64,000 nt of DNA, from contig LSRY02000005.1 in assembly GCA_001643675.2 (NCBI GenBank), positions 62,001 through 126,000 of the forward strand. Reading direction: 5' to 3'. Of the stretch, positions 43,855 to 64,000 are shown one piece after another; position 1 is the stretch's first letter; each line of letters starts with the position of its first letter. The position numbers were made by a program, and so were the translations under genes. The DNA comes from Monocercomonoides exilis PA203 (lineage: Eukaryota; Protista; Preaxostyla). The notes beneath the pieces were generated by a model that saw only the letters and a program-made list of their open reading frames with translations, was not told the origin of the DNA and searched no databases.

Positions 43855-45129
43855 TTACATCACCAGCCTTTTCAGCAGCGGTATTTTCTGCCAAAGCGCA
43901 GTCACAATCCATGTTGTCAAATACACGCTCACGCAAAGCAGAGGAGTGAACCACAACGGGTTCATATCGTAATAAGACTTCTTCAGCACTTTCGGAAACA
44001 GATAATCTGCCACAAACCTGAAGATCGCAGACTCGTTCAGCAAATAAATCCCCAACGTGCACGATCCTGTCGAACTGAAGAACCACATCACACACTTCTC
44101 AAATCTGCTTGTGGGCTTCCATTTGCACGTCAATGCATAAATCCCACACGCAAACCCCGCAAACGCAAAAGTCGTCGGCAAGCCATAATACTCGTAAAAC
44201 CTCCAGAACTCAGCGTTCTGTGCATAATGCCCAGTCAGAACAACCAGCCCCCAGTTGCACAACGAAGCAAGCACAAACACTCCAAAGCACACCAACGCTG
44301 TCACTTTGCTCTGCCAGTTCACTCTCCCCAGAATTGGGAGGTATCCTGGCTCTTCCACCCAGTTTGGGTGTTCTGCCGATGGATTGCGCTGATACTCCAT
44401 CACCGTCCAGCAGTAATACCCCACCAGAAACGTCAGAAACATCGCCACAAACGCATCTGCCCACACTCCTATTTGCATCCCAACCAGAAAAGTGTGCAGC
44501 AGGTGATGCGACACAAAGATCGACAGAATCGTCATTTCAAGCACTTTCCGGCTTGTCGCTTTCACTGCCTGCCTCACAAACGGCACAATCATCAGCATCC
44601 TCATCGCAATCTGCAAATACCAAAGCGTCCCAGGGTTCGCAAAAAAGATGTTTACCATCTGCCGAATCCGCTTGAACGGAGTCGCCAACTTCATTGCAGC
44701 TTCGAACAGCTTGAAGTTGTACGGGATCATCCACAACGTGTATTGCACCATTCGCCGCACCACATACTTCATCGTGCTTGTTGCGCTGTCGTTCAGCCGT
44801 TTCGGAGACAGCATGATGATCGCTGTCACCACCATAAACAAATGTGTCCCGATGCGCCCAAGTGCACAATACAGATTTGCCCAAATCCAGTACGAAAGCT
44901 TTTCGTTTTTGCAGTAAAGCTTGTACTGGTGCCTTTGCCGCAGCCCTGCATGGCTCAGCACAACTGCCAGAGCTGCAAACGATTTCAATATGTCCAACGA
45001 CGCAATCCTCTTTGTTGGCGCCGCTCCATTTTGAATGCCTCTTCCATCATTTGTTTGTTCGGAAAGTTCCTTCAGCTCTATCGCGCTCGAACTTTCCTCG
45101 TTTGCAATCAACGACTGCGTCTCATCCAT
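43855..45129 (-). CDS. Acyltransferase family 3 (OafA/YrhL-like) integral membrane O-acyltransferase
   Basis: N-terminal RIASLDILKSFAALAVVLSH (RxxxLDxL(R/K)..VxxxH), GTHLFMVVT, TLWYLQI and TLGIYLLN, with about 10 hydrophobic helices. No intron in the core. First ATG at 45129; an extra 5' exon near 45250-45340 is possible. Confidence 0.85.
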   Translation of the reverse strand: MDETQSLIANEESSSAIELKELSEQTNDGRGIQNGAAPTKRIASLDILKSFAALAVVLSHAGLRQRHQYKLYCKNEKLSYWIWANLYCALGRIGTHLFMVVTAIIMLSPKRLNDSATSTMKYVVRRMVQYTLWMIPYNFKLFEAAMKLATPFKRIRQMVNIFFANPGTLWYLQIAMRMLMIVPFVRQAVKATSRKVLEMTILSIFVSHHLLHTFLVGMQIGVWADAFVAMFLTFLVGYYCWTVMEYQRNPSAEHPNWVEEPGYLPILGRVNWQSKVTALVCFGVFVLASLCNWGLVVLTGHYAQNAEFWRFYEYYGLPTTFAFAGFACGIYALTCKWKPTSRFEKCVMWFFSSTGSCTLGIYLLNESAIFRFVADYLFPKVLKKSYYDMNPLWFTPLLCVSVYLTTWIVTALWQKIPLLKRLVM

Positions 45130-45686
45130 CTGTTGATGCGATGCACAAAATATAGCAAAATATCGCAATGAAAGCAAACAATTCAAAAATGCCCACGAGC
45201 CAACATCAAAAACATAAATTCACATTCGAATAAATCGAGAAATAAGCACACATATTTTTCTGCAAATTGCTCAGCCTGCAGTTGGCCATCATCTTCAGGG
45301 TTCTCATTTTGTCCAATGCAGGCGCAACCATCCATCAGATTTTCTCCTCCTTCTAAATAAATAACAAAGTCAAAATTTTCGCTTTAAAGGAAGAAAATCG
45401 CAGAATAATGTGTACCCATCGTTATAGCTTGAGAGGAAGTCGCTTCTCCTCCCCCCTTTCTATCTCCAATTTCATAATTTGCTAAACGAGAATCAAACAA
45501 TGAATGAACAATCTGAGAAATCAAACGTACTAAAAAAAATAACAAACATGTATGTGTATAAAGATATTATCATCACACAAACAACAAAATGGATTATCGT
45601 AAATATCAGCGTCATTGCTCAAAATTTAACATTTGCAGATGCTTATCGAAAAATTTTCATGTTCCAAACTATATTCACAAAAATTA

Positions 45687-48600
45687 CACCAAAAATAATT
45701 CTAATTCGAAAAAAAATAATTCAATTTCGAAAATTAATAATTCGAATTCGGAATTAATATTTCAATTTCGAAAAAAAATAATTCGATTTCGGAATTAATA
45801 ATTCAAAATCGAAAAAAAATAATTCGAATTCGGAATTAATATTTCAATTTCGAAAATTAATAATTCGAATTCGGAATTAATATTTCAATTTCGAAAATTA
45901 ATAATTCGAATTCGGAATTAATATTTCAATTTCGAAAAAAAATAATTCGAATTCGGAATTAATATTTCAATTTCGAAAAAAAATAATTCGATTTCGGAAT
46001 TAATATTTCAATTTCGAAAATTAATAATTCGAATTCGGAATTAATAATTCGAATTCGAAAAAAAATAATTCGATTTCGAAATTAATAATTCAAAATCGAA
46101 AAAAAATAATTCGAATTCGGAATTAATATTTCAATTTCGAAAAAAAATAATTCGATTTCGGAATTAATATTTCAATTTCGAAAATTAATAATTCGAATTC
46201 GGAATTAATAATTCGAATTCGAAAAAAAATAATTCGATTTCGAAATTAATAATTCAAAATCGAAAAAAAATAATTCGAATTCGGAATTAATATTTCAATT
46301 TCGAAAAAAATAATTCGATTTCGGAATTAATATTTCAATTTCGAAAATTAATAATTCGAATTCGGAATTAATAATTCGAATTCGAAAAAATAATTCGATT
46401 TCGAAATTAATAATTCAAAATCGAAAAAATAATTCGAATTCGGAATTAATATTTCAATTTCGAAAAAATAATTCGATTTCGGAATTAATATTTCAATTTC
46501 GAAAATTAATAATTCGAATTCGGAATTAATAATTCGAATTCGAAAAAAATAATTCGATTTCGAAATTAATAATTCAAAATCGAAAAAATAATTCGAATTC
46601 GGAATTAATAATTCAATTTCGTAATTTATTAATTCGATTTCGAAAAAGAATAATTCAATTTCGAAAATGAATGTTTTTTGATTTGTGGAATGAATAACTT
46701 GTGTTTGGGGTTTTAAATTCTTTCAATTTTTATCTCATCAGTATATTTTGTTTATCAATATTTGAAAAATGATGCATTTTCATAAAAAATTTTCTTTCAT
46801 TTTGAATGAAGATTTATTGATTGAAGTTAATTTGAAAACGAAATAAATTCATTTTCATGTTAAAAACCGATATTATCCAAAATTTTGCCAATGAAACAAT
46901 CACATTATTGTGAAGAAATAATTCAATAATCGTGATAATTTTTTTTTAATTTTTATTTGGTTATTCAATAGAATGAATATTTATTAAATTATTATTAATT
47001 GAGAGAATCTTTTCGAAAATGAAAAAAAAAATTAAAAAAATTGATTTATTGATTGTTGCAATAAAAAACAGTTTTCTATTAGTAATTAAATTTGATTGGT
47101 TAAAAAATAACTTGAACTTTTCTGAAATCCATTCTCGAGAAAAATTAAAAATTTCCGTTTTTAATGAATTTTGAAATTGAAATATTTATTTTCGAAATTG
47201 AATTATTCTTTTTCGAAATCGAATTATTTTTTTCGAAATTGAAATATTAATTCCGAATTCGAATTATTTTTTTCGAAATTGAATTATTCTTTTTCGAAAT
47301 CGAATTATTTTTTTCGAAATTGAAATATTAATTCCGAATTCGAATTATTTTTTTCGATTTTGAATTATTAATTTCGAAATCGAATTATTTTTTTCGAAAT
47401 TGAAATATTAATTCCGAATTCGAATTATTTTTTTCGATTTTGAATTATTAATTTCGAAATCGAATTATTTTTTTCGAAATTGAAATATTAATTCCGAATT
47501 CGAATTATTTTTTTCGATTTTGAATTATTAATTCCGAATTCGAATTATTTTTTTCGATTTTGAATTATTAATTTCGAAATTGAAATATTTATTTTCGAAA
47601 TTGAATTATTCTTTTCGAAATCGAATTATTTTTTTCGAAATTGAAATATTAATTCCGAATTCGAATTATTTTTTCGATTTTGAATTATTAATTTCGAAAT
47701 CGAATTATTTTTTCGAAATTGAAATATTAATTCCGAATTCGAATTATTTTTTTCGAAATTGAAATATTAATTCCGAATTCGGAATTAATAATTCAAAATC
47801 GAAAAAAAATAATTCGAATTCGGAATTAATATTTCAATTTCGAAAAAAATAATTCGATTTCGAAATTAATAATTCAAAATCGAAAAAAATAATTCGAATT
47901 CGAATTAATATTTCAATTTCGAAAAAAATAATTCGATTTCGAAATTAATAATTCAAAATCGAAAAAAAATAATTCGAATTCGGAATTAATATTTCAATTT
48001 CGAAAAAAAATAATTCGATTTCGAAAAAGAATAATTCAATTTCGAAAATAAATATTTCAATTTCAAAATTCATTAAAAACGGAAATTTTTAATTTTTCTC
48101 GAGAATGGATTTCAGAAAAGTTCAAGTTATTTTTTAACCAATCAAATTTAATTACTAATAGAAAACTGTTTTTTTATTGCAACAATCAATAAATCAATTT
48201 TTTTAATTTTTTTTTTTTCATTTTCGAAAAGATTCTCTCAATTAATAATAATTTAATAAATATTCATTCTATTGAATAACCAAATAAAAATTAAAAAAAA
48301 AATTATCACGATTATTGAATTATTTCTTCACAATAATGTGATTGTTTCATTGGCAAAATTTTGGATAATATCGGTTTTTAACATGAAAATGAATTTATTT
48401 CGTTTTCAAATTAACTTCAATCAATAAATCTTCATTCAAAATGAAAGAAAATTTTTTTATGAAAATGCATCATTTTTCAAATATTGATAAACAAAATATA
48501 CTGATGAGATAAAAATTGAAAGAATTTAAAACCCCAAACACAAGTTATTCATTCCACAAATCAAAAAAACATTCATTTTCGAAATTGAATTATTCTTTTT

Positions 48601-49053
48601 CGAAATCGAATTAATAAATTACGAAATTGAATTATTAATTCCGAATTCGAATTATTTTTTTTCGATTTTGAATTATTAATTTCGAAATCGAATTATTTTT
48701 TTTCGAATTCGAATTATTAATTCCGAATTCGAATTATTAATTTTCGAAATTGAAATATTAATTCCGAAATCGAATTATTTTTTTTCGAAATTGAAATATT
48801 AATTCCGAATTCGAATTATTTTTTTTCGATTTTGAATTATTAATTCCGAATTCGAATTATTAATTTTCGAAATTGAAATATTAATTCCGAATTCGAATTA
48901 TTAATTTTCGAAATTGAAATATTAATTCCGAATTCGAATTATTTTTTTTCGATTTTGAATTATTAATTCCGAAATCGAATTATTAATTTTCGAAATTGAA
49001 ATATTAATTCCGAATTCGAATTATTAATTTTCGAAATTGAATTATTTTTGGTG
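45687..49053. mobile_element. Non-autonomous foldback-type DNA element: TA-flanked, terminal inverted repeat CACCAAAAATAATTC, arms built of ~20-bp tandem subrepeats, internally an inverted dimer
   Basis: Left end TA|CACCAAAAATAATTC (TA 45685-45686). Right end GAATTATTTTTGGTG|TA (TA 49054-49055). The unique spacer ~46670-47170 recurs as its reverse complement at ~48065-48575. Orientation switches at the palindrome centred on 47777/47778. No credible ORF. Confidence 0.8.
45700..46670 (+). repeat. Tandem array of ~20-22 bp monomers (AATAATTCGAATTCGGAATT / AATATTTCAATTTCGAAAAAA variants) with a ~160-bp higher-order period
   Basis: The monomer variant AATAATTCGAATTCGAAA recurs at 46043, 46207, 46370 and 46528. 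Confidence 0.9.
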
Positions 49054-49295: not shown

Positions 49296-52200
49296 ATGCT
49301 TCCGCTGCGACGGATACATGCAAAACATTTGAGTAGCGGATTTGGAGACAATCTCGTTTCCGCGCACTTTTCAAGTTCAACGCGAATGTATCGCCATATA
49401 ATTGATGATTATTGAATTTCACTGAATTATTGCTTTTTAAAAATAGGCTTTTTGCATTTATGAAGTCTGGATATCCAGTTTGTTTTTTTGTTTATTTGAA
49501 AAAGAAATTTTATTGTTTTGTCATTTTTTGGCTCAGCAATGGAAAGCCTTCACACGTAATACTTTCACTTTGATGTGCATTATCAATGGGTTCCAACTTT
49601 GCTTTTTGGGGTTCAAGCGAGTGGATATTTTTTCGATGGGATTTCCCGAAGTCATGAAGACATTGGGGTTTGCCCGCAGCAATATCTGAAAGAAATGATG
49701 ATAAATATGTGTTAACTTTATTTTCTGTGGAATTTTTTCCATCTTTTTTAGAAGATATCTCGATCCTTCGATCCGATTTTTGTCATCAACTGCGCTAATT
49801 ACCTTTTTCATAATATCTTCGATTTTGTGCATCATCCCTATTTTGCTAATGTTTGCATTATGTCTCACCTCAACAGCACAAAAAAGGATGAACCAGTTTT
49901 TGCGGAACACAGCATCATTTCTTCTGCTTTTAACAAGTCGAGTGCTGAGAATCCCCAACATCATATTCCTTCTTTCTCCGCTGATGTGCTTCATCAATTC
50001 TTCGATTGCTGACTCGTCCAGCATATCCATAAGCATCAAGTCGAACTTGTCATTCTGCGAAGGCGGCTCGGGGCTTGATCTTGGAATAACTGGTGCTGTG
50101 TTTGTGTTTGTGCTGAATGCGTTTTGGGTGCTTGTCTTCTACTTCCATTTCCAGCCCACTTTGTCTGAAAAAAGCGACTTCACTTTGCGGCGGACGGGGC
50201 TTCTGGCGTTTGTAGAGAGTGCCATTTCGGCTGTTGTGATGGCAGCCACACTGCTGCAGGTTCTGAGCCCTGTCTTCACATCGCTCGGGATCGGCCTGGC
50301 GTTCCTGCTGCTTGCGCTGCTTGTGGCACTGAATCAGCCCTTTTTCTCCATCCGGCCGAACACAATCTACTGCGCCATGCTGTCTGCCGCGTCGGGTGCT
50401 GGCTGGGCAAGTTTTGCGATCGGCTTCATTCAGAATCTGCTGGTGCAGCTGGGCGCAGTCTCTCTCCCTGAAACTAAAGCTCCTGAAATTGTAAGAAAAG
50501 AGCAGCTGAAATATGAGCCATCTTCAGTCAAATCAAATTTTCATTTTCCATCTACTTATTCTGATGCTTCTGTCACATTCTCTTCTTCCTCCTCTTCTTT
50601 CTCTTTGTCATCAAATCCTTCTTCGTCTTCTTCATCTTCTGTGTATTATTCGCTTTCTGCTCTTTCTTGGATCATTTGTGCCATTCTGCCTGTTCTCTTT
50701 GCCTTTTTGGGTGCTTTTCTATCAAAAGCAAATTCACACAGAAAATGGCTTCTGAAGCCTGTTTATGAACAAACAAAAGGAAAAACAACCAAAAAGGATA
50801 AAGAGGAGAAACAAAAGACGATAGAAAACGAAAATAAAGATTCTTTCTCAAAAATGACTAATTCCACTTCAACATCCTTTTTATTATCAGCCTCGTCATC
50901 GTCTTCTTCTTCTCCCTCGCCTTCTTCTTCTTCTTCTTCTTCTTCCTCGTCAACCTCATCCCCTTCCTCCATTTTATATTCAAACACTCAACCACCCAAT
51001 CCACAAACCACGTCACAAGAGCCTCCACATCCCTCTCAGCCCACACCTCATTCGCTTCTGCAGCAGCGTTTCTATCAGCAGCGCCAGCGTCTGCACAGCC
51101 TCTTCCACCCAACAAGCCACCGCTCCAGCCGCATCATCGGCTTTACTCTTGTTGTGGACGGGGTGAAGTCTGAATTCCGCCTCGACAGATTCCACCCGGA
51201 TGTGCTCAGAACACACACTGCGCTCAAAGCAAATGAGGGAAAAACAGGCGGAAAGGCAAAGAGGCACAAAAATGGAGCAAGCAGAGGGGCTGAAGTGGTG
51301 AAAATCAACACACTTCTTCCAAATCAGAACTTGTTTGGAACGCTGCCTTCGACTCCTCCTCAAACGCATTCATCTCCTTTTGCATCAACATCACCACCAT
51401 CATCTTCCTCTTCCTCTTCTGCAAATCTACTTCAACGCTCCGTTTCTCCTTCATTTCAGTCTGTTTCATCTCCAACCGCAACACCCAAACACCATCACTC
51501 ACGTCCCCATGTGCCTCCCCTCCAAATATCCCCCTCTTCTTCCAATTCTTCTTCTTCTTCCTCTGCCTCATCTCAACTGCCTGTCCAGCATCTCTCCTTG
51601 GTCGACCAGGAGAAGCTGGTCAAGCGGCTGGTGAAGAACTGGGAGAGTCCCGATGACATCGAGCCGTCGCTGCGCTTTTTGCAGTTTTCTGAGTTCGGTG
51701 AAGACCCGGATGTGCTCGGCCTGGTGCTCGCGCTGCTCGAAGAGGCGCTCAAAAAGCCAGTCGCCGTCGACTCTGCCGATGCGCGGGTGACTTTTGCGCT
51801 CTTTATGCAGCATCTGCTGGGCGTCACGAAGAAGCACAAGAAGCTCAGCACTGCCAAAAAGGCTGTTGTAGCCAGTGCGATTATGAACAGCAAGGGGAAG
51901 AACGTTCCATCACTTGCATCAAATCAGAAGGGATTGATGGCTTCTGCAAGTTCGCTGCTGCTTTCCTCTCAAATTACTCAAACAGCAACAGACAAAGAGA
52001 AGCCAAGTGAGAAGATGGCTGGAAAGATTCCAGTAGTACCCAATTATACACAGACAACGCTGCACAACTCAAAAGAACAATCTGCTTCATTCACTTCATC
52101 GCCCGCACACACATCGCTGTCTTCTCTTGCCACTCTTCATTCAGGTTCTTCTTTTGCTTCCTCTTCATTCACTTCTGACGGGATCATTCCACATTCAGCC

Positions 52201-55200
52201 ATTTATCCCAACTCCTATTTTGACACAGTGCTTTCCTCTGCCTCAGTCACAACGCGTCTCCATCTTCTGCTCCAGGAAGGCGTGCAGCTGTATCCCAGCC
52301 TCCTCAACAAGTGGATCATGGCGATGTTGGAGTTCCATCTGGACGAGTCAGGAGCGCTGAAGGAGCACAGGAAGAGGAAGATCAAAGGTGAAAGAGAGAA
52401 AAACAGCGGAGGAAAGGGCAGTGATGGCGGAGATAATCAGCAGGTGTATGAAGGATTGGTCTACACAGCGGCACACGCAGCAGAGCGGTCGTATGGAGTG
52501 ATGCAAGTGGTGGAAGAGGCACAGCGGGAGTATCTTTCTGCTGTGCTGCATTTGCGGGGGATGTGGGAAGAGTTGTGCCGACGGACGATCAACTGCAGCC
52601 GCGTGATGCACAGCTGCGAGGCAGCGCTGGAGGCAGCCAAGCGGAGCGAGAAGTTGTATTTAGAGGCGATGGAGAGGGCGCCGCTGAGTGTGAATGTGAT
52701 TGGCGGGTACGGCCGGCTGCTGATGGACGTGTGCAACGACGAGGAGTTCGGGGCAGAGCTGCTGCATTTGGGGGAGATTGTGGTGGAGGAGGAGAAGTTT
52801 GAGCAGCTCAGAATAGCAGAAGAGGAGAGGATGGCTGAAGACCAGCTGAGGCAGCGTCTGACGGAGATTGCGAAGGAGCGGTTTGACAGCTTCGCGAGTG
52901 TGGAGAGAGAGGCAGAGGAAGATGAAGAAAGAGGAAGAGAAGAAGAGAAGGAAGAACATGGTAGAGAAGAGGAGGATGAAGAAGGAGAAGATGACATACT
53001 GGATGAAATGAACGATGCATCACTGTTTAGCACGAAGCAGACATTTGATAGTGGGAAAAGTGATGGAGAACAGCAAAAGGAAAATGACATGAAACAAAAA
53101 AGCATTGGAATGCAGAACATTCGGAAGGAGAAAACAAGCAATGACAAACCTTCATCAAAGCTACCTTTTTCTCCTTCTTCATCAAAAAATGCAGAAAAAA
53201 CAGAGCATCCTATTTCTCCTTCACCAAAGGAGGACATCAAAAATGCTTCCCATTTGTTTCCATCTGCGCATGCTGATACTCACTCACTTTCACCTTTTCC
53301 TCCTCCTCCTCATCCTCCTTCCTCTTCTTCACCTTCACCCTCACCTTCTCCGCTGATGAAAACAGACACATTTTCAACTTACTCCTCGTCTTCTCAGCAG
53401 GACAGTCATCAGTCTCACTTGAGCAAACAGCCAAGCACCTTCAAGCTTGTTTCGTCGCGATATTCCACATCGGAGGCAGCTGTCGAAGGGATGACACACG
53501 ATGTCGCTGAGATCCTGAAGAAATATCCCTCTTCTCTCTCGAGCAGCTTTCAAAGCAGCAAGGAAAAGAGCAAAACGGACTCTTCCTCCGCACATAAGGA
53601 GAAAAGCAAGAATAATTCGCAGTTTGGTTACCTGGTGCCATCTCTGCTGTTGGTGGGGATTGTTGCTGGGCTGATTCTGGTGACTTCTTTTATTCTGAAC
53701 GAAGTGCTGATGAATGGAGTGAAGACGTTTCTGAAGGACATCAAGTTTTCCATCGCCATTTCCGAGTCAGCGAGCCAAATGGTGCGGTTTGTGCAGGACA
53801 CGTCGCTGGAGCTGAAGGTGCTCGAAGCAATTCTCAACCATACGACAACAGCAACAACGAAGAATCGAGAGAGAAAAGAAGAGGATTTACACACCGAATG
53901 GAAGGAGCATTACAACAAAGGAAGTGAACATTCAACTTTTTCGTCACCATCAACAGTCTCGTTCAAATTTGAACGAGACGAAAAAAGTATTTGTGAAACT
54001 TTAGATAAACACTCTTCTCAAACGTCTTCTCAAACATTTGATGCTCAGCATTTGGGGAGATATTCATTTCAATCAGACAAAAACAAACTTCAACGCATTT
54101 CATCCACACCACAAATTCAGAGCATTTCATCTCGACTCACAACTGACAATTCATTTCGCAACAATCTTATAACAACACTTCATTCGCATACACCTTTACA
54201 ATCGTATTTGCCTTTTTCTGAAATAACACAGCCACTTCAAAACAATTCACACATCTATGAAGAAGTACAATATCCTCATGCAAATTCCACACATTCACCA
54301 TCAAATTCACTTCATTCAATTTCTCTGCTGACTGATTCTCAATCACTCATCACACACACATTATCTATCCTCAATAAGATCATTCAGCTGCACACAAAAG
54401 CATTCATGACGAACTTCTCAATGCTATACGACTCATCGCCATACCTCTCCTTTTGGCACAGCAATTATTTTGCTCCCACTCTTCTGCTTCCTGTTCCTTC
54501 TGACTTGTCGCAGTTGTCGTCGTATGTTGCTCTAAAGACAGATTCTCTCAATGCGCTTTCGTGGGTGGCTGACTGCATTGCAGAGTTTGGATCACTTGCT
54601 GAAGAATTCGAAAAGCTTCTGTTGGATCAAGTTGACGAACCAGGAGGTGGTAATTCTTTTGGATTCAAAATGAACAAATTTGATCCGTCTTCATTCTCAG
54701 AATCTCATTATCCATCTTCTCTTTCCTCCAGCCAGTATTCAGATGATCCAATCACTCTTCTCTACTTCCTCCACGACACTTACATGACTTCTATTATGAA
54801 TGTCCCTATTTCGATTGCTGAATCTCTGAAGCAGCTGTCTGTTCTGTGCGTCTCCAGCTCCATCGTCCAGGCAGACCAGGCGCTGATTGCGTCTTCGGTG
54901 TGCTGCACAATCGGTGTGGTTGTCACGCTTGCGTTTATGATTGGACCTGTGCTCAAAGCACGTTCAGATGTCATCAAGCACAGAAAGTGCAGCCTGACAA
55001 CGCTGTGCGTGCTGGATGAGGACAGCATTGAACGGAAGATTGAAAGGCTTGATCCAACATTTGTGACGAAAGCAAAGAGAAACCAGATGCTGCTGGAGAA
55101 GGAAAGAGAAAGAGAGGAACTCAGAAAGAAACAATTGGAAGAAGAAAAGCAGAGAAGACTAAGGCTGAAAGAAGAGAAAGCAAAAGTCAGAGAAGCAAAG

Positions 55201-57657
55201 CCGATCCATCACACAGTCACGCAATACACCACAAGCTCTGGTTCTGTTTACTCAACTGCTTCTTCTTTATCTACTCCAACGCAATCTGCACCTGCGTTGG
55301 CTTCATATCCATTCATAGCAACTCCAACATCCAGCCTTCCGCAGTCCCAAATAATGATGTGCCCAATGGTGAGCCCTTCCATTTCTCCTTCTGCTTCCCT
55401 GGCTTATCCAATTAATACATATCAGCTGCAACCATATCGCAGTACGATAGCTGATTATCCAAAGGACTCGAAACAGCAGCAGTTGGCTCAAGATGGAAAA
55501 GTGGAAATGACGCAAAATCCAACATCACCACATTATCAATATGTTCCTTTTGCTTCATTACAAAATTATTCGCCTCAGGTGCCAGAAGGATTGTTCGATA
55601 AAGGTTTTTCAGAACGGACGGATAAAAAAGTTTTTACAAATGCTTCTGTATTTGACACGCAAACATCAATTGACAGTTCAAAATTTGTTCTCAAAAATCA
55701 ATCTTCATTCGATCCGCAGCCGACAGTATTTGTGGCATCTGAACTTCCAAAAGAAAGAAAGAATGCTGCTGAAGAGAAAACACATAAATATGATTCCACT
55801 AAATCTTCACTTAACAGAAAAGAAATTACAGGCAATAATAATAAAAGGAAAGAGGACGCTTCTTCTATAGAGGGTGATGAAGGAGATGAATCAAGCACAA
55901 TTACAAGCATCAAGAATGACAGTTCAAAATCTGCATCTCAGCGGCATTCTTCTCGGCATCATCACCATGCACGACGCAAAGTTATCGACAAACAATCTGA
56001 GGAAGAGCTGGAAATGCTGACCGAACTGGCAAAAGCAAACGAAGAGGATGCTCAAAAGCGAAAGGAGCAGCGTTCAACTGACGTTGAGGAACAGTTGCGT
56101 CATCTCACTCACATTGTGCCTGCAAGCTATCTCTCTCGAATGATTTGGGGAATGTGCTTGATGCTGTCGGTCATTGCTGTGTTCTTTGCACTGGTGATTG
56201 TTGAGAGTGTGCTTATCAGCGATGAGATGGGAAAGCTTGCGATGGAAGGACAACGAAGTGTGCTGACTTCACAAATAGCAGGATTTGCAGCAATGCTCGT
56301 GAGCAACTCGACGGTAGGGGAGGAGCATGCAGCTGTGTTTGAGTATGAGCGCTCAAATGGAAAAGAGTGGCAGGAAAGATTGAAGGAGATGAGCAAGCAC
56401 TCATCGAAACATCATTCAACGTCTTCTTCTCTTGAGGAGGCAACACAGGCATCTCTCCAGATTACTTCTCCTGTTCTCTTCAACACATCCTTTCTCTTGT
56501 CGCAGCAGAAGGTGGCTTCTGTGCTGAAAGGGCTGAACTCGCTGCTGATATCGCTCAACAGCATTTTGCTTGTGGGCTCGGATTCAGCTCCTCCGTCTGG
56601 CGATGATGCGATAGATTCGATGACAGCGTCGAGGTCGCAGGGGGTCAACCACGATGTGGAAACCTTGCTGAACAGCAAAGTGAAGTGCCTCATGCTGAAT
56701 GAAGCGCTGTGCAAAGAAGGTCGGATTGCAGGCATGACAGACGAGTTCTATGGGCTGAATGCTCTTCTTCTGCTTTTCATTGACAACGTGCAGACACTCA
56801 CAAACGCGAAGGACGAGGAGCTTGTTCCGACCAATCCGTCTTTTCAGTTCATCACGACAGCCTCAAAATTTGATCTTGGAGATGGGATTAAAATGGCAGA
56901 GCTCCTGCGGGAGAAGTACATCAAGGGAGTTGTGAATGTAATTCCTTCGCTTGTCATTGTGCTGTTCATCATATTTCTGATAGTGATGCTGATGGTGTTT
57001 GCGCTGTGCTTTTCTCCTCTTCCGCGAATACTCCGTGGCGTTCAAAGCAAAACGATGTATATTGAGCATCTTGCAACCTCTGCGGAGGAGGAGCAGATTG
57101 TGTGGAGCGAAGAGCTGGTGACGCAGGTGGGGCGGATGGACGAGGCACACCACGTGCTGGTCGACACGCTGGCAGCAATTGTGGCGCTGGTTGCGCAGCA
57201 CGCCCCGCTGGCAGAGGTGGCGCAGGCAGGGGACAAGCTGCTGGCAGTGGCGATGATCCACTTTGCAGACGAGGAGCAGATGATGGAGGCCACGCACTAT
57301 CCGGCGCAGGTGCAGAGCAGACACTGCCAGGCACACGTGGAGCTGCTGGGCTCGGCGCTGGCGTTTGTGGCAGGCATCGAGGCAGGCGAGGCGCCGCTGT
57401 CGGATGTTGTGGCGTTCTGCTCGATGTGGATCATGAGCCACATCCGCACAGCCGACCAGCAGCTGGCCATCTATCTGCTGCGCACCTTCGATGCCAAGCG
57501 CCTGGCGCAGCCTGTGCCCTTCGACCGCCTCGTGCTGCCGCCTTCCTGGAAGGCCCACATGCGCAGCGGGGCTCTTTCGCAGAAAGACAGAGAGCAGCTG
57601 CGGTGCACAGTGAAGAGGATCAAGGAGAAGGAAGAGAGGGGAGAGTCGATTTGCTAG
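49296..57657 (+). CDS. TmcB/TmcC-like multi-pass membrane protein with TPR-like domain and C-terminal hemerythrin domain
   Basis: ATG 49296 and three short 5' introns (donors GTATCG, GTTTGT, GTTTGC; the last is 49668-49751) splice in frame into the 2625-aa ORF. N-terminal TM bundle. TmcB-type helical repeat AQREYLSAVLHLRGMWEEL..LYLEAMERAPLSVNVIGGYGRLLMDVCND (~52510-52780). Four further TMs. Hemerythrin WSEEL..MDEAH..HFADEEQMM..YP..HCQAH..WIMSHIRTAD (57097-57480). Confidence 0.88.
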
Positions 57658-58174
57658 ACGGTTGCATTCATTTTTTCTCTTTTCCGTTCACTTTCAATTT
57701 CATTTTTCGATTTATTTGTGTTGTAATATTGCTTTAATGTTTGCGTTTTTCGTGAAGCTTTTTGTTAGATTTTTGGTTGTGTGTGTTTTCTGTTGTGGTT
57801 TTGAAGCATTCTCCATTATTATTGTGTTTTCCACTGCTTCACTTCTTCCTGCTCAATATTTTTTTCCCCCTATATTTTTGCATGTTTATTTAAAATGGGT
57901 AATTTTAAGTTGATGAATTGAAGCTGTCAGACGAAGCTTTCAAAACTTCTGTTTCAAGTTGAAAAAATGAAAATCTCTTTTTTTCCAATCTCTTTCCGAT
58001 TGAGCGACTTCAACGAATTTTTGCAAGTGCTTATCTGCTCGCATGCTTGAAGATAGACAAAAGTGCCTGATGGATAGGGTATTTGGAGTGGATGTTTTTT
58101 TTCTTGGCCCATAGGTTATTTTGTGCTGAGTGAATTTTTTTGAAAAAGCCCACTCTTAGCGCAGCAAGTCGCAG

Positions 58175-59065
58175 ATGGCAGACGAGGGCATGTGCGAAAT
58201 ATGCAAAAAGCAGGAGTGGAAGTACAAGTGCCCGGAGTGCGGGGTGCGGACATGCTGTGTGGAGTGTGTGAAGAAACACAAAGAACAGAGCGGGTGCACG
58301 GGGAAGAGGCAGCCGCAGCAGTTTGTGCGTCTGTCAGAGATGAACGTGCAAACGATGGTTTCGGACCTGCACTTCCTGGAGTCGATGGCGCTGGAGGTGG
58401 AGAGGGCGAAGCGAAAAGAAAAGGAAGCGAAAAGGCCTTCGTTTGTGCCTCCCGAGAACCTGGTAAGGAAGATGCAGCAGGCGCGCAAGGAAATAAAAAT
58501 TGGGGAACGTGGTGAAGAGGAGGTGCCGGCAATGCCACGGTTCGGGACAAAGCCGATTTTGTATGAAGCAATGATGAGCGAGCTGGAGGCTGTTGAAGCG
58601 TCGATGAGCGACAGCAGTGCAAAAAGGGAAGAGCCACAGCAATCATCGAAAGGTGCGCTGTTCCAGGCATTTATTGCGCAAGAAAAACGGGATGGGAAAG
58701 ACAAGAGCAAAGATGATGGAATGGAAGAAGTTCGACCGCAGAAGCAGCGACGCCTTGCAGAAAACAGCTCCGAGAAAGCTTCTGGGGAGCAAAATGGGGA
58801 GAAAGCGGTGCCTGTGCTTCAGCCAGCAGAGAGTGCCCCAGTGCTGCAGGGGATGGCTGGATATTATTCTCCTTTTTGCTATGCTCCCCAAGTTCCATTT
58901 CAGCCATTTTCTTTTGGAGCTTATTTGCCCCAAGGTTTCAGAATTCTATGATTTTCTTTTTTCATTTTTCGTGTTCACTTTTTCCATTCTTTTTTTGGAG
59001 CAGATTATTATGATTCATTTGCAGCCACGATGCACACACCTGCAATGCCACAGCCACCACAATGA
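58175..59065 (+). CDS. BCD1: zf-HIT protein, box C/D snoRNA assembly factor BCD1/ZNHIT6-like (N-terminal part clearly recognisable)
   Basis: CEICKKQEWKYKCPECGVRTCCVECVKKHKEQSGCTGKR..FVRLSEM..VSDLHFLE matches the BCD1-type HIT zinc finger and following helix. A probable intron at 58935-59003 leads to a stop at 59065. Confidence 0.72.
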
Positions 59066-63147: not shown

Positions 63148-64000
63148 TCACAATGATATGAGCGAGCTGCTTGAATCAGGGATCTGCGAGTTGCACTCAG
63201 ATGGCATCTGGCAATCAACTGCATCAGCAATGGTCATGACCATTGCTCCTTCTGGAAAGTGCTGGATGAACTCCTTCTTCAAATCAGTGAGTGCCGGCCG
63301 ATCGTTTGGCTGCTGGCACAATGTGCATCTCACTGCGTTGCTCAAAGACGAGTTTTCAACAGCCTCTGGCTTTGGCTTTTCTCCGTTCACAATCTTCTGC
63401 CCTGCCACCTCTGCTGGATACTCCCCAAACGGGATCTGCAGTGTCAAGCACTCCCACAGCATCATCCCAATCGAAAAGGCAACTGATTCCTTTGTTGCCT
63501 CCATTTTCTTGTTCATCAGCAGTTCTGGTGCCTTCCACCTCAAGCACTCTTTTTTGAAGTCATCCTCATCCTCAAATGCTGATGAGGGAAGTGATTCATC
63601 ATCGTCATCGTCAGTTGCAGACGTTGCAACTATTGACGAAGAGATGGATGAAGAATCTGAGTCATCATCGGACAATAAATCTGAGTGCATCACAATGCAG
63701 ATTACCATATGCTCAGAGAATAAAACAATGTGCGGACTGAGATTGGAAAGAGAAGAAAGAGGATTTTCCATTTCATCAAATGAATGCAGTGCGAGATTGG
63801 CCACCCAGAACATAATTTGGGAAGCTGTTTGTTCTCTTTCTTTCAGTGAGCCAATTGCCATCTCCTTCTTGGCATTCCTTCCGTGCAACAGCATGAACAG
63901 CGAATCCCTCAAGTCCACAATCAATTTTTCATGAGGCGATGAACAGGCCATCGCATCCACCAGATTCGACATCGACGAGGTGGTTGGACACATGCTCTCT
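63148..64000 (-). CDS. 3' end (pseudokinase domain) of a second receptor-like gene paralogous to 33852-41588; truncated by the window edge
   Basis: The 281-aa translation is nearly identical to the C-terminus of the 2604-aa ORF. Confidence 0.85.
   Translation of the reverse strand, partial: ESMCPTTSSMSNLVDAMACSSPHEKLIVDLRDSLFMLLHGRNAKKEMAIGSLKEREQTASQIMFWVANLALHSFDEMENPLSSLSNLSPHIVLFSEHMVICIVMHSDLLSDDDSDSSSISSSIVATSATDDDDDESLPSSAFEDEDDFKKECLRWKAPELLMNKKMEATKESVAFSIGMMLWECLTLQIPFGEYPAEVAGQKIVNGEKPKPEAVENSSLSNAVRCTLCQQPNDRPALTDLKKEFIQHFPEGAMVMTIADAVDCQMPSECNSQIPDSSSSLISL

Follow-up and report, generated by a model that had tools for sequence, protein, structure and literature searches.

What does a hemerythrin of bacterial type do at the end of a very large membrane protein in Monocercomonoides exilis, a gut protist that lacks mitochondria? 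The gene under study, MONOS_7061, encodes 2719 amino acids in exons that lie within positions 49296-57657 of the forward strand of the window, which is the stretch of 64,000 nucleotides that was analysed. An earlier note on this DNA described a TmcB-type membrane protein ending in an intact hemerythrin, and this core observation was confirmed by Pfam, TIGR02481, ligand alignment and a fold match. The protein is predicted to be a 12-pass, receptor-like membrane protein with the hemerythrin as an inner tail, and its order is an N-terminal membrane block of eight helices, a TPR_TmcB domain, two modules of the form TM-loop-TM (TM, transmembrane helix) and the C-terminal hemerythrin (Table 1).

Table 1. 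Features of MONOS_7061, in coordinates of the window
Feature	Position	Strand	Basis and remarks
Exon 1, public model	49296..49387	+	Start codon 49296; public protein P0152 maps; GT-AG ends read in sequence
Exon 2, public model	49447..49477	+	Public-model prediction; GT-AG ends
Exon 3, public model	49537..49667	+	Public-model prediction; encodes first membrane helix, weakly hydrophobic (about 49558-49614)
Exon 4	49752..57657	+	Frame unbroken to stop codon; last 2634 residues identical to P0152
Remaining seven of the eight helices in the N-terminal membrane block (the first is in exon 3)	49810..50709	+	Inferred from hydropathy
TPR_TmcB domain PF25474, then acidic coiled-coil-like stretch	52513..52794	+	Pfam, 32.1 bits against cut-off 27
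Module 1: TMs 53641-53697 and 54898-54954 around an outer loop that has long low-complexity inserts	53641..54954	+	
Module 2: TM 56161-56217, outer four-helix bundle PilJ/NarX/McpN-like, TM 56950-57006	56161..57006	+	Predicted model
23-residue cytosolic helix joining last TM to N-terminal loop of hemerythrin	57019..57087	+	Predicted; model residues 299-321
Bacterial-type hemerythrin, seven iron ligands and pocket residues	57103..57474	+	Pfam, TIGR02481, alignment, predicted fold
Two-helix C-terminal extension, conserved Pro-x-Ser start	57541..57636	+	In about half of the fusion family

Most of the protein is read from a single open frame of 2650 codons (49705-57657, + strand). The public model likewise begins at 49296, a start that would require three short predicted introns at the 5' end; in the Paratrimastix relative P0125, the position that matches the weak helix of exon 3 holds a clear helix. 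RNA contigs tile the gene without a joint from the TPR domain to the stop codon, over 51760-57750, and one of them covers both the last TM and the hemerythrin, although these contigs are from one study and strand, level and a single transcript are not readable from them. The single frame and the contig across the TM-hemerythrin stretch bear out the claim that receptor and hemerythrin belong to one gene. A separate hemerythrin gene, or an intron between the TM and the domain, was excluded by the one frame, by the same layout in 56 same-frame pairs and by the RNA contig. Bacterial contamination was excluded by the 2.1 Mb M. exilis contig, its eukaryotic neighbour genes and the introns.

Several lines of evidence identify the terminal domain. 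The proposed HMM searches placed PF01814 (31.4 bits, cut-off 25.3), TIGR02481 (65.9 bits, cut-off 51.75, E 3e-18) and PF25474 all above cut-off. The motif H-HxxxE-HxxxH-HxxxxD is present with 7/7 ligands, at H 57148, H 57259, E 57271, H 57322, H 57334, H 57439 and D 57454, and the two tryptophans that had been described as conserved lie at 57103 (N-terminal) and 57427 (pocket). The seven ligands, all of which the earlier note had listed, align with those of McHr and DcrH, and the pocket residues are likewise in register, including the positions of DcrH I119 and McHr L114. Residues L57157, F57262, W57427, I57430 and I57442 would form a hydrophobic pocket at the five-coordinate iron. The expected hemerythrin fold was recovered in a predicted model (pLDDT 91) that matches McHr and DcrH with TM scores of 0.82-0.84 and an rmsd of about 2 A, against 0.69-0.78 for invertebrate hemerythrins. 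From its ligands the domain should hold two irons; sensing of NO by it has no specific support.

McHr of Methylococcus (PDB 4XPX) is the best single-sequence and Foldseek match, but it is a soluble single domain, and the MONOS_7061 domain also falls below the cut-off of the bacteriohemerythrin subfamily model NF033749 (66.2-72.9 bits, cut-off 84). As proposed for MONOS_7061, DcrH of Desulfovibrio vulgaris (PDB 2AVK, 2AWC) is a membrane receptor whose sensor region lies outside and whose C-terminal hemerythrin is cytosolic. The two share the seven ligands, the use of the N-terminal loop of the hemerythrin as a tether and the fold (TM score 0.83), with 25% identity in the hemerythrin domain. Unlike DcrH, MONOS_7061 is without a HAMP or MCP signalling domain, has 12 predicted TMs rather than two, and is built on a eukaryotic TPR_TmcB scaffold. 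Bacterial hemerythrin sensors (DcrH, Bhr-DGC, Bhr-HD-GYP) carry by definition a fusion to a functional domain (MCP, GGDEF, HD-GYP, ATPase; PMC9388753), and further traits of the group are a large substrate tunnel, fast autoxidation and redox-dependent output. MONOS_7061 has the conserved iron ligands without any of these fusions. We favour, with middling confidence, the reading that MONOS_7061 is a receptor tuned by O2 or redox state at the di-iron site.

A PF25474 domain above cut-off downstream of an N-terminal multi-TM block places the protein among the TmcB/TmcC proteins of protists, with Atlas neighbours in Preaxostyla, Parabasalia and Heterolobosea. A hydropathy scan finds four hydrophobic helices between TPR and hemerythrin, the number given in the earlier note, and the same scan finds four in 36 of 39 full-length relatives. 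The numbers of K+R before and after each TM in 36 relatives (TM1 2.5/0.8, TM2 1.1/3.1, TM3 2.3/1.1, TM4 1.2/2.1) follow a positive-inside pattern that supports the proposed placement of TPR and hemerythrin together on the cytosolic side; N-glycosylation sequons were uninformative as topology evidence. The linker that follows the last TM, which had been put at about 25 residues, is corrected to about 30 residues up to the hemerythrin W, mostly predicted helix.

At E<=1, Pfam finds only TPR_TmcB and hemerythrin on the MONOS_7061 frame, in agreement with the claim that PAS, cyclase and kinase domains are absent from it. The lack of any catalytic or known output domain is a point against reading the protein as an O2/redox receptor. 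PAS and/or cyclase domains, which other protist TmcB/TmcC members may usually carry although they are not a curated criterion, are absent, and the chain ends in a hemerythrin. PF13426 found no PAS domain in the M. exilis genome, and its four cyclase loci lie elsewhere; in a parabasalid Atlas cluster whose fold is similar, 37% of the members have PAS. Paratrimastix KAJ4460679, which combines a hemerythrin with a kinase, hinted at a kinase output but was set aside: several introns and low-complexity sequence lie between the two parts, and the kinase portion possesses a Met of its own, so the gene model may be a merger.

The outer modules suggest a second input. In a predicted model (pLDDT 91, pTM 0.83) module 2 is a four-helix bundle flanked by two TMs, which is the PilJ/NarX layout, and VIA-align scores were Z 13.5 for PilJ, 12.3 for McpN and 11.6 for NarQ, values (11-13.5) close to the background that the tool shows for helical bundles. 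The best eight structural matches are without exception sensor domains of bacterial receptors, or complexes thereof, four rows among the Atlas matches are PilJ-family receptors, and module-2-like folds occur in the Atlas in Parabasalia, chytrids, chlorophytes and ciliates. Foldseek gave no significant match to module 2, the PilJ HMM (PF13675) gave no match, and Pfam and PDB sequence searches gave nothing significant. A profile comparison with NarX/NarQ gave a weak match (probability 6.5%), in which the family motif L-S-G-x-R (Arg in 45/57) aligns near A-G-S-L-R. Module 2 shares with PilJ, NarX, NarQ and McpN a predicted fold and the TM-bundle-TM layout, and perhaps a small-residue-plus-Arg motif just past the first TM, but its Arg motif is shifted by one residue from the NarX P-box when aligned, it is about 100 residues longer, it has a Cys pair, and there are two modules per chain. 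Arg 56254 and the cysteines at 56686 and 56710 in the outer loop are conserved. The C-terminal half of module 1 resembles module 2 (hhalign 93.9%). Because the second outer loop is modelled with a PilJ/NarX/McpN-like fold and resembles the first, the layout would be DcrH-like within one chain, and because such loops look like bacterial four-helix ligand-binding domains, the protein probably takes an external input too.

MONOS_7061 is not alone. Genome-wide counts from position tables show that 59/69 TPR_TmcB places in M. exilis have a hemerythrin downstream, and all TIGR02481 matches in the genome are these fusion genes plus two partial copies of MONOS_7061. The earlier interpretation is partly supported: it stands as to fold, ligands, frame, topology, missing enzymes and the occurrence of other fusions, but it missed the bacterial look of the outer loops, the loss of O2-iron histidines in most of the family, and that the fusion is the normal state of the scaffold in this genome (about 59 such genes, so that MONOS_7061 is no singleton). 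The fusions anticipated in other metamonads were found, all in Preaxostyla (Blattamonas, Streblomastix, Paratrimastix); Blattamonas KAK2957477.1, automatically annotated as 'putative hemerythrin', Paratrimastix KAJ4459726.1 and Streblomastix KAA6404451.1 have the same TPR_TmcB and hemerythrin architecture with the full seven ligands. In a FastTree of the short hemerythrin domain the fusions group together with six non-fusion rows inside (support 0.82); unfused matches carry no taxon, and this tree does not identify the hemerythrin donor.

The genome paper lists M. exilis hemerythrin as a laterally acquired oxidative-stress protein (PMC6759080). That reading, the confinement of all genome matches to these genes, and the terminal slot past the last TM with no other enzyme would suit a membrane-anchored scavenger of O2, NO or peroxide, or a redox catalyst, possibly switched by the outer modules, so that the hemerythrin is the output or protective part. 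We regard this as improbable: one di-iron site per 2700 residues would scavenge poorly, the 59 members with their divergent outer loops resemble receptors, and the ligands of the reactive iron are missing in most members.

Of 68 sampled fusion domains, 65-68 retain each of the three histidines at the six-coordinate iron and each of the two bridging acids, while only 13 retain the second histidine of the O2-binding iron. Both histidines of that iron survive in nine, including MONOS_7061 and its Blattamonas sister KAK2957477; the full ligand set is missing in 59, and in 53 of them the loss is at the O2-binding iron. Judged from the ligands, O2 sensing cannot be what the family as a whole is for, and classical O2 binding is unlikely as its common function, because most members have lost the histidines of the O2-binding iron; in most paralogues the fold probably serves another purpose. 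By the same residues MONOS_7061 is in the minority subfamily that keeps them.

The uneven conservation would also fit a sensor of iron or metal status, in which the domain folds or docks only when loaded with metal, O2 binding is incidental, and one- and two-metal paralogues read different metal levels. The hemerythrin-like domain of FBXL5 is an analogue. That no iron-uptake pathway is known from M. exilis (PMC12308965) also speaks for such a role, but we consider it unlikely for MONOS_7061, whose domain is of the O2-binding DcrH/McHr type and whose subfamily keeps both O2-iron histidines and a small hydrophobic pocket across two genera, beyond the needs of metal-dependent folding.

Frequent ligand loss, tolerated across several clades, might instead mean that the domain now serves for docking, stabilised by its metal but without a part in sensing, and that MONOS_7061 has simply retained an ancestral intact site. 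Intact sites are indeed probably ancestral, because Paratrimastix members also have them. Yet the seven ligands are retained at about 30% identity through a whole subclade (six rows, SH-aLRT 93; Blattamonas sister at 31% identity, 98), and the clustering of intact sites on the tree was reached in 0/500 shuffles, although kin share labels; this implies selection, and we give the docking domain little credence.

A receptor tuned by O2 or redox state could work as follows, with two inputs on one chain, the outer modules and the inner hemerythrin. The two related TM-bundle-TM modules, if they pair, would be the equivalent of a dimer of a bacterial chemoreceptor or NarX-type sensor, one module for each half, and would bind a small ligand. 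The last TM would run via the short helix into the N-terminal loop of the hemerythrin holding two predicted irons. Binding of O2 to the five-coordinate iron would oxidise the site. Such oxidation orders the N-terminal loop in DcrH (PMC9388753); because the loop here is tied to a membrane helix, it may pass the O2/redox state to the conformation of the receptor. Since there is no enzyme domain, the output may be partner binding at the TPR_TmcB/coiled-coil region or at the C-terminal extension.

No paper on the TPR_TmcB-hemerythrin fusion or family was found in a literature search covering few subscription journals, in line with the earlier statement that no functional description was known; the automatically annotated Preaxostyla relatives have names only, and the papers searched gave no description of their architecture or function. 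In M. exilis every hemerythrin match forms the tail of a large protein of receptor-like build, which changes the oxidative-stress reading of PMC6759080. For O2 sensing in anaerobic protists, above all in eukaryotes without mitochondria, MONOS_7061 is a good test case: as one of the few copies with a complete site, it has a soluble 200-residue tail that would lend itself readily to iron and O2 spectroscopy, and its half-site paralogues would be natural controls. A wider proposal, possible but doubtful, is that Preaxostyla swapped the usual PAS and cyclase parts of a protist receptor scaffold for a bacterial hemerythrin and then expanded it, and that the resulting enzyme-free receptor family is their main means of gas, redox and metal sensing, in which NarX/PilJ-like single-chain pseudo-dimers would read an external ligand and the tail would read O2 (intact sites) or one metal (half-sites). 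If true, it would mark the first case of a eukaryotic membrane O2 receptor based on non-heme iron, and in a cell without mitochondria.

Our analysis established that the C-terminal domain of MONOS_7061 has the fold, iron ligands and pocket residues of a hemerythrin and shares one frame with the receptor, that the fusion is family-wide, and that the intact site is conserved across genera. The tail scored above the cut-offs of both PF01814 (31.4 bits; cut-off 25.3) and TIGR02481 (65.9; 51.75), supporting the earlier note's identification, and missed that of NF033749 (66.2; 84). All seven iron ligands listed there align in register with those of the Methylococcus bacteriohemerythrin (McHr) and the Desulfovibrio chemoreceptor DcrH. 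The pocket positions are Leu, Phe, Trp, Ile and Ile, the last two aligning with McHr L114 and DcrH I119 in alignments with mutant structures. An AlphaFold2 model built from 57 sequences (pLDDT 91) had McHr and DcrH-Hr as its best Foldseek rows (TM by target 0.81-0.84, rmsd 1.8-2.4 A, probability 1.0), followed by invertebrate hemerythrins; E values for the McHr/DcrH-Hr rows were only 0.015-0.08 because the query model comprised 510 residues.

The gene start proposed previously, 49296, is also that of the public model, whose exons sum to 2720 codons and whose introns (3/3) read GT-AG. Over its last 2634 residues the open frame is identical to the public protein (P0152, 2719 aa, KAH7830242.1). 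Because the long frames of paralogues likewise open just upstream of the same Tyr-x-Asp motif, a putative shared 5' intron fits. No link was seen between the three neighbouring genes and the receptor.

Coordinates of MONOS_7061, its surroundings and related loci
Feature	Position	Strand	Remark
Exon 1	49296-49387	+	public model MONOS_7061
Exon 2	49447-49477	+	public model MONOS_7061
Exon 3	49537-49667	+	public model MONOS_7061
Exon 4	49752-57657	+	public model MONOS_7061
Single open frame	49705-57657	+	2650 codons, up to the stop
Membrane acyltransferase	43855-45186	-	Acyl_transf_3
Nested inverted repeats	45685-49050		AT-rich, directly 5' of MONOS_7061
zf-HIT protein	58175-58951	+
Kinase fragment	63148-63993	-
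Second copy	L016:1-4240 (G000:C47 about 469900-474139)	-	95-97% identical
Third copy	L015:1-1560 (G000:C47 about 217900-219459)	-	3' end only, from window 57041
Split member	L024 (G000:C80 about 948000-958000)		frames of 1665 and 1365 aa
Paratrimastix KAJ4460679.1	L027:8001-15256		TM modules, intact hemerythrin, protein kinase

In four RNA runs from one study, 91-93% of sampled words from 51700-57700 were present. RNA contigs, which inform neither on strand, level nor single-transcript status, occupied 30 of 30 bins of 51760-57750 and had no intron-type joint there; one (56857-57750) carries the last TM, linker and hemerythrin together. Since the second genomic copy, L016, has every one of the 23 letters that vary in the 3' part, the RNA libraries contain that copy as well, and the 3' contig mixes the two.

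The L016 copy, annotated as MONOS_6371 and MONOS_6372, lacks window 50839-56193, with 22 different bases at the junction and a changed frame; its variant letters and junction were both found in RNA contigs. MONOS_6372 (482 aa) comprises an outer loop, one TM and an intact hemerythrin. The duplicate starts at the edge (window 49054) of the inverted-repeat element, whose arms of about 450 nt are 97% complementary and whose end recurs at hundreds of genome places. In the third copy, probably MONOS_13539, the hemerythrin is cut short by an early stop codon, and this copy looks like a pseudogene fragment.

Hydropathy of MONOS_7061 gave an N-terminal block of eight helices, of which that in exon 3 is weak. 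Four more helices lie further along, and the same scan found these four in 36 of 39 full-length relatives. In these 36, flanking Lys+Arg counts alternate (in-out, out-in, in-out, out-in) as the positive-inside rule predicts, which most likely puts the hemerythrin, the TPR and the low-complexity middle region in the cytosol, in agreement with the earlier tentative placement of TPR and hemerythrin on that side. A Cys pair in the second outer loop is conserved in at least 90% of rows.

TPR_TmcB places in the M. exilis genome number at least 69, and TIGR02481 places 61, at E<=0.1 (57 at E<0.001; 18 over cut-off). Paired by position (downstream, same strand), a hemerythrin follows 59 TPR places, in 56 cases in an open frame of equal length; the two unpaired hemerythrins are the partial copies of MONOS_7061. 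Its layout is common to all 10 other loci examined. The four cyclase loci lie away from these genes, and a PAS_9 profile had no match in the genome. At L024 the TPR and hemerythrin sit in two long frames, pointing to an intron or frameshift between them; two further split cases lie on contigs C60 and C43.

Among the best 150 matches of a profile search over 1.84 billion representatives, about 74 were TM plus hemerythrin proteins. The 20 fusions identified come from M. exilis, Blattamonas nauphoetae, Streblomastix strix, Paratrimastix pyriformis and short JGI metagenome fragments, and none of these 20 was seen outside Preaxostyla; oxymonads and Paratrimastix therefore have the fusion in common. 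KAJ4460679.1 may be two merged genes. Five metagenome proteins (P0013, P0017, P0019, P0028, P0035) are soluble, with four or five tandem hemerythrin domains and mostly intact sites.

Only 9 of 68 fusion domains are intact. The two His that open the motif, which we take to be the Fe2 pair, are both missing in 26, the second alone is missing in 27, and 6 differ at other ligand positions; the five remaining ligands are kept in 65-68 of the 68. In a quick, unrooted tree built with ligand columns removed, MONOS_7061 is sister to Blattamonas KAK2957477 (SH-aLRT 98, 31% identity) within a clade of six intact rows (SH-aLRT 93), the other intact rows being from Paratrimastix and Streblomastix. Because unfused hemerythrins are nearly all intact, the fusions probably began with an intact site that went missing on several occasions, an order read from this unrooted tree. 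Ligand states and tree together make MONOS_7061 a candidate, among the family's best, for real O2 chemistry; O2 binding cannot be assumed for other members. An inert docking role, in a family where so many domains have lost ligands, is improbable for the MONOS_7061 hemerythrin, which retains all seven.

The model of module 2, the second TM-outer loop-TM unit (pLDDT 91, pTM 0.83), was compared with 48,161 solved chains. PilJ ranked first (Z 13.5, rmsd 2.2, 128 aligned), followed by McpN (12.3), PcaY (12.3), Adeh_2942 (11.7) and NarQ (11.6, covering both TMs), then MCP2201, HK9 and LytS, with designed bundles and talin below the sensor domains at 10.4; helical bundles reach Z near 13 by common arrangement alone. 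In the Atlas the best row was a parabasalid cluster (TM 0.62, PAS in 37%), and bacterial PilJ-family kinases, GGDEF proteins and chemoreceptors appeared at 0.52-0.56, where chytrid, chlorophyte and ciliate clusters were also listed. Module 1 resembles module 2 across its last 98 columns (hhalign 93.9%). Against this likeness to sensor domains, neither Foldseek nor the PF13675 profile matched module 2. A weak profile match of the family to seven NarX/NarQ sensor domains (6.5%, E 0.006), scoring above 40 column shuffles, set the family's L-S-G-x-R beside the P-box. Module 2 may work like NarX/NarQ/PilJ sensor domains; we do not file it as a member.

In hemerythrins three His hold Fe1 and two hold Fe2, where O2 binds; the N-terminal loop of the DcrH domain is ordered when the domain is in its met form, disordered when it is deoxy, and is the proposed route of signal to the neighbouring domain (PMC9388753). 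In the MONOS_7061 model the corresponding loop is carried by a predicted helix of 23 residues that runs on from the last TM, and the receptor could thus move when O2 oxidises the site. The same iron site might instead report iron status, which we consider doubtful. In the M. exilis genome paper, hemerythrin figures solely as a gene against oxidative stress that came from bacteria (PMC6759080). A scavenging or catalytic output here is rather unlikely. We give about an even chance to a receptor shifted by O2-driven oxidation, with outer modules that would read a second signal and an output that, as no enzyme domain is present, would be protein binding.

In the parts available, the Mastigamoeba and Naegleria papers suggest O2 sensing for their hemerythrins and do not describe a TPR_TmcB-hemerythrin fusion, and the word "hemerythrin" is absent from the portions seen of the supplements of the Preaxostyla genomics paper. 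Databases give names only, some members being called "putative hemerythrin" or named after the TPR domain, and the fusion apparently lacks a description in the literature searched. The architecture is real, apparently undescribed and assembled from known parts, and represents a new form of hemerythrin-tailed receptor with a putative function.
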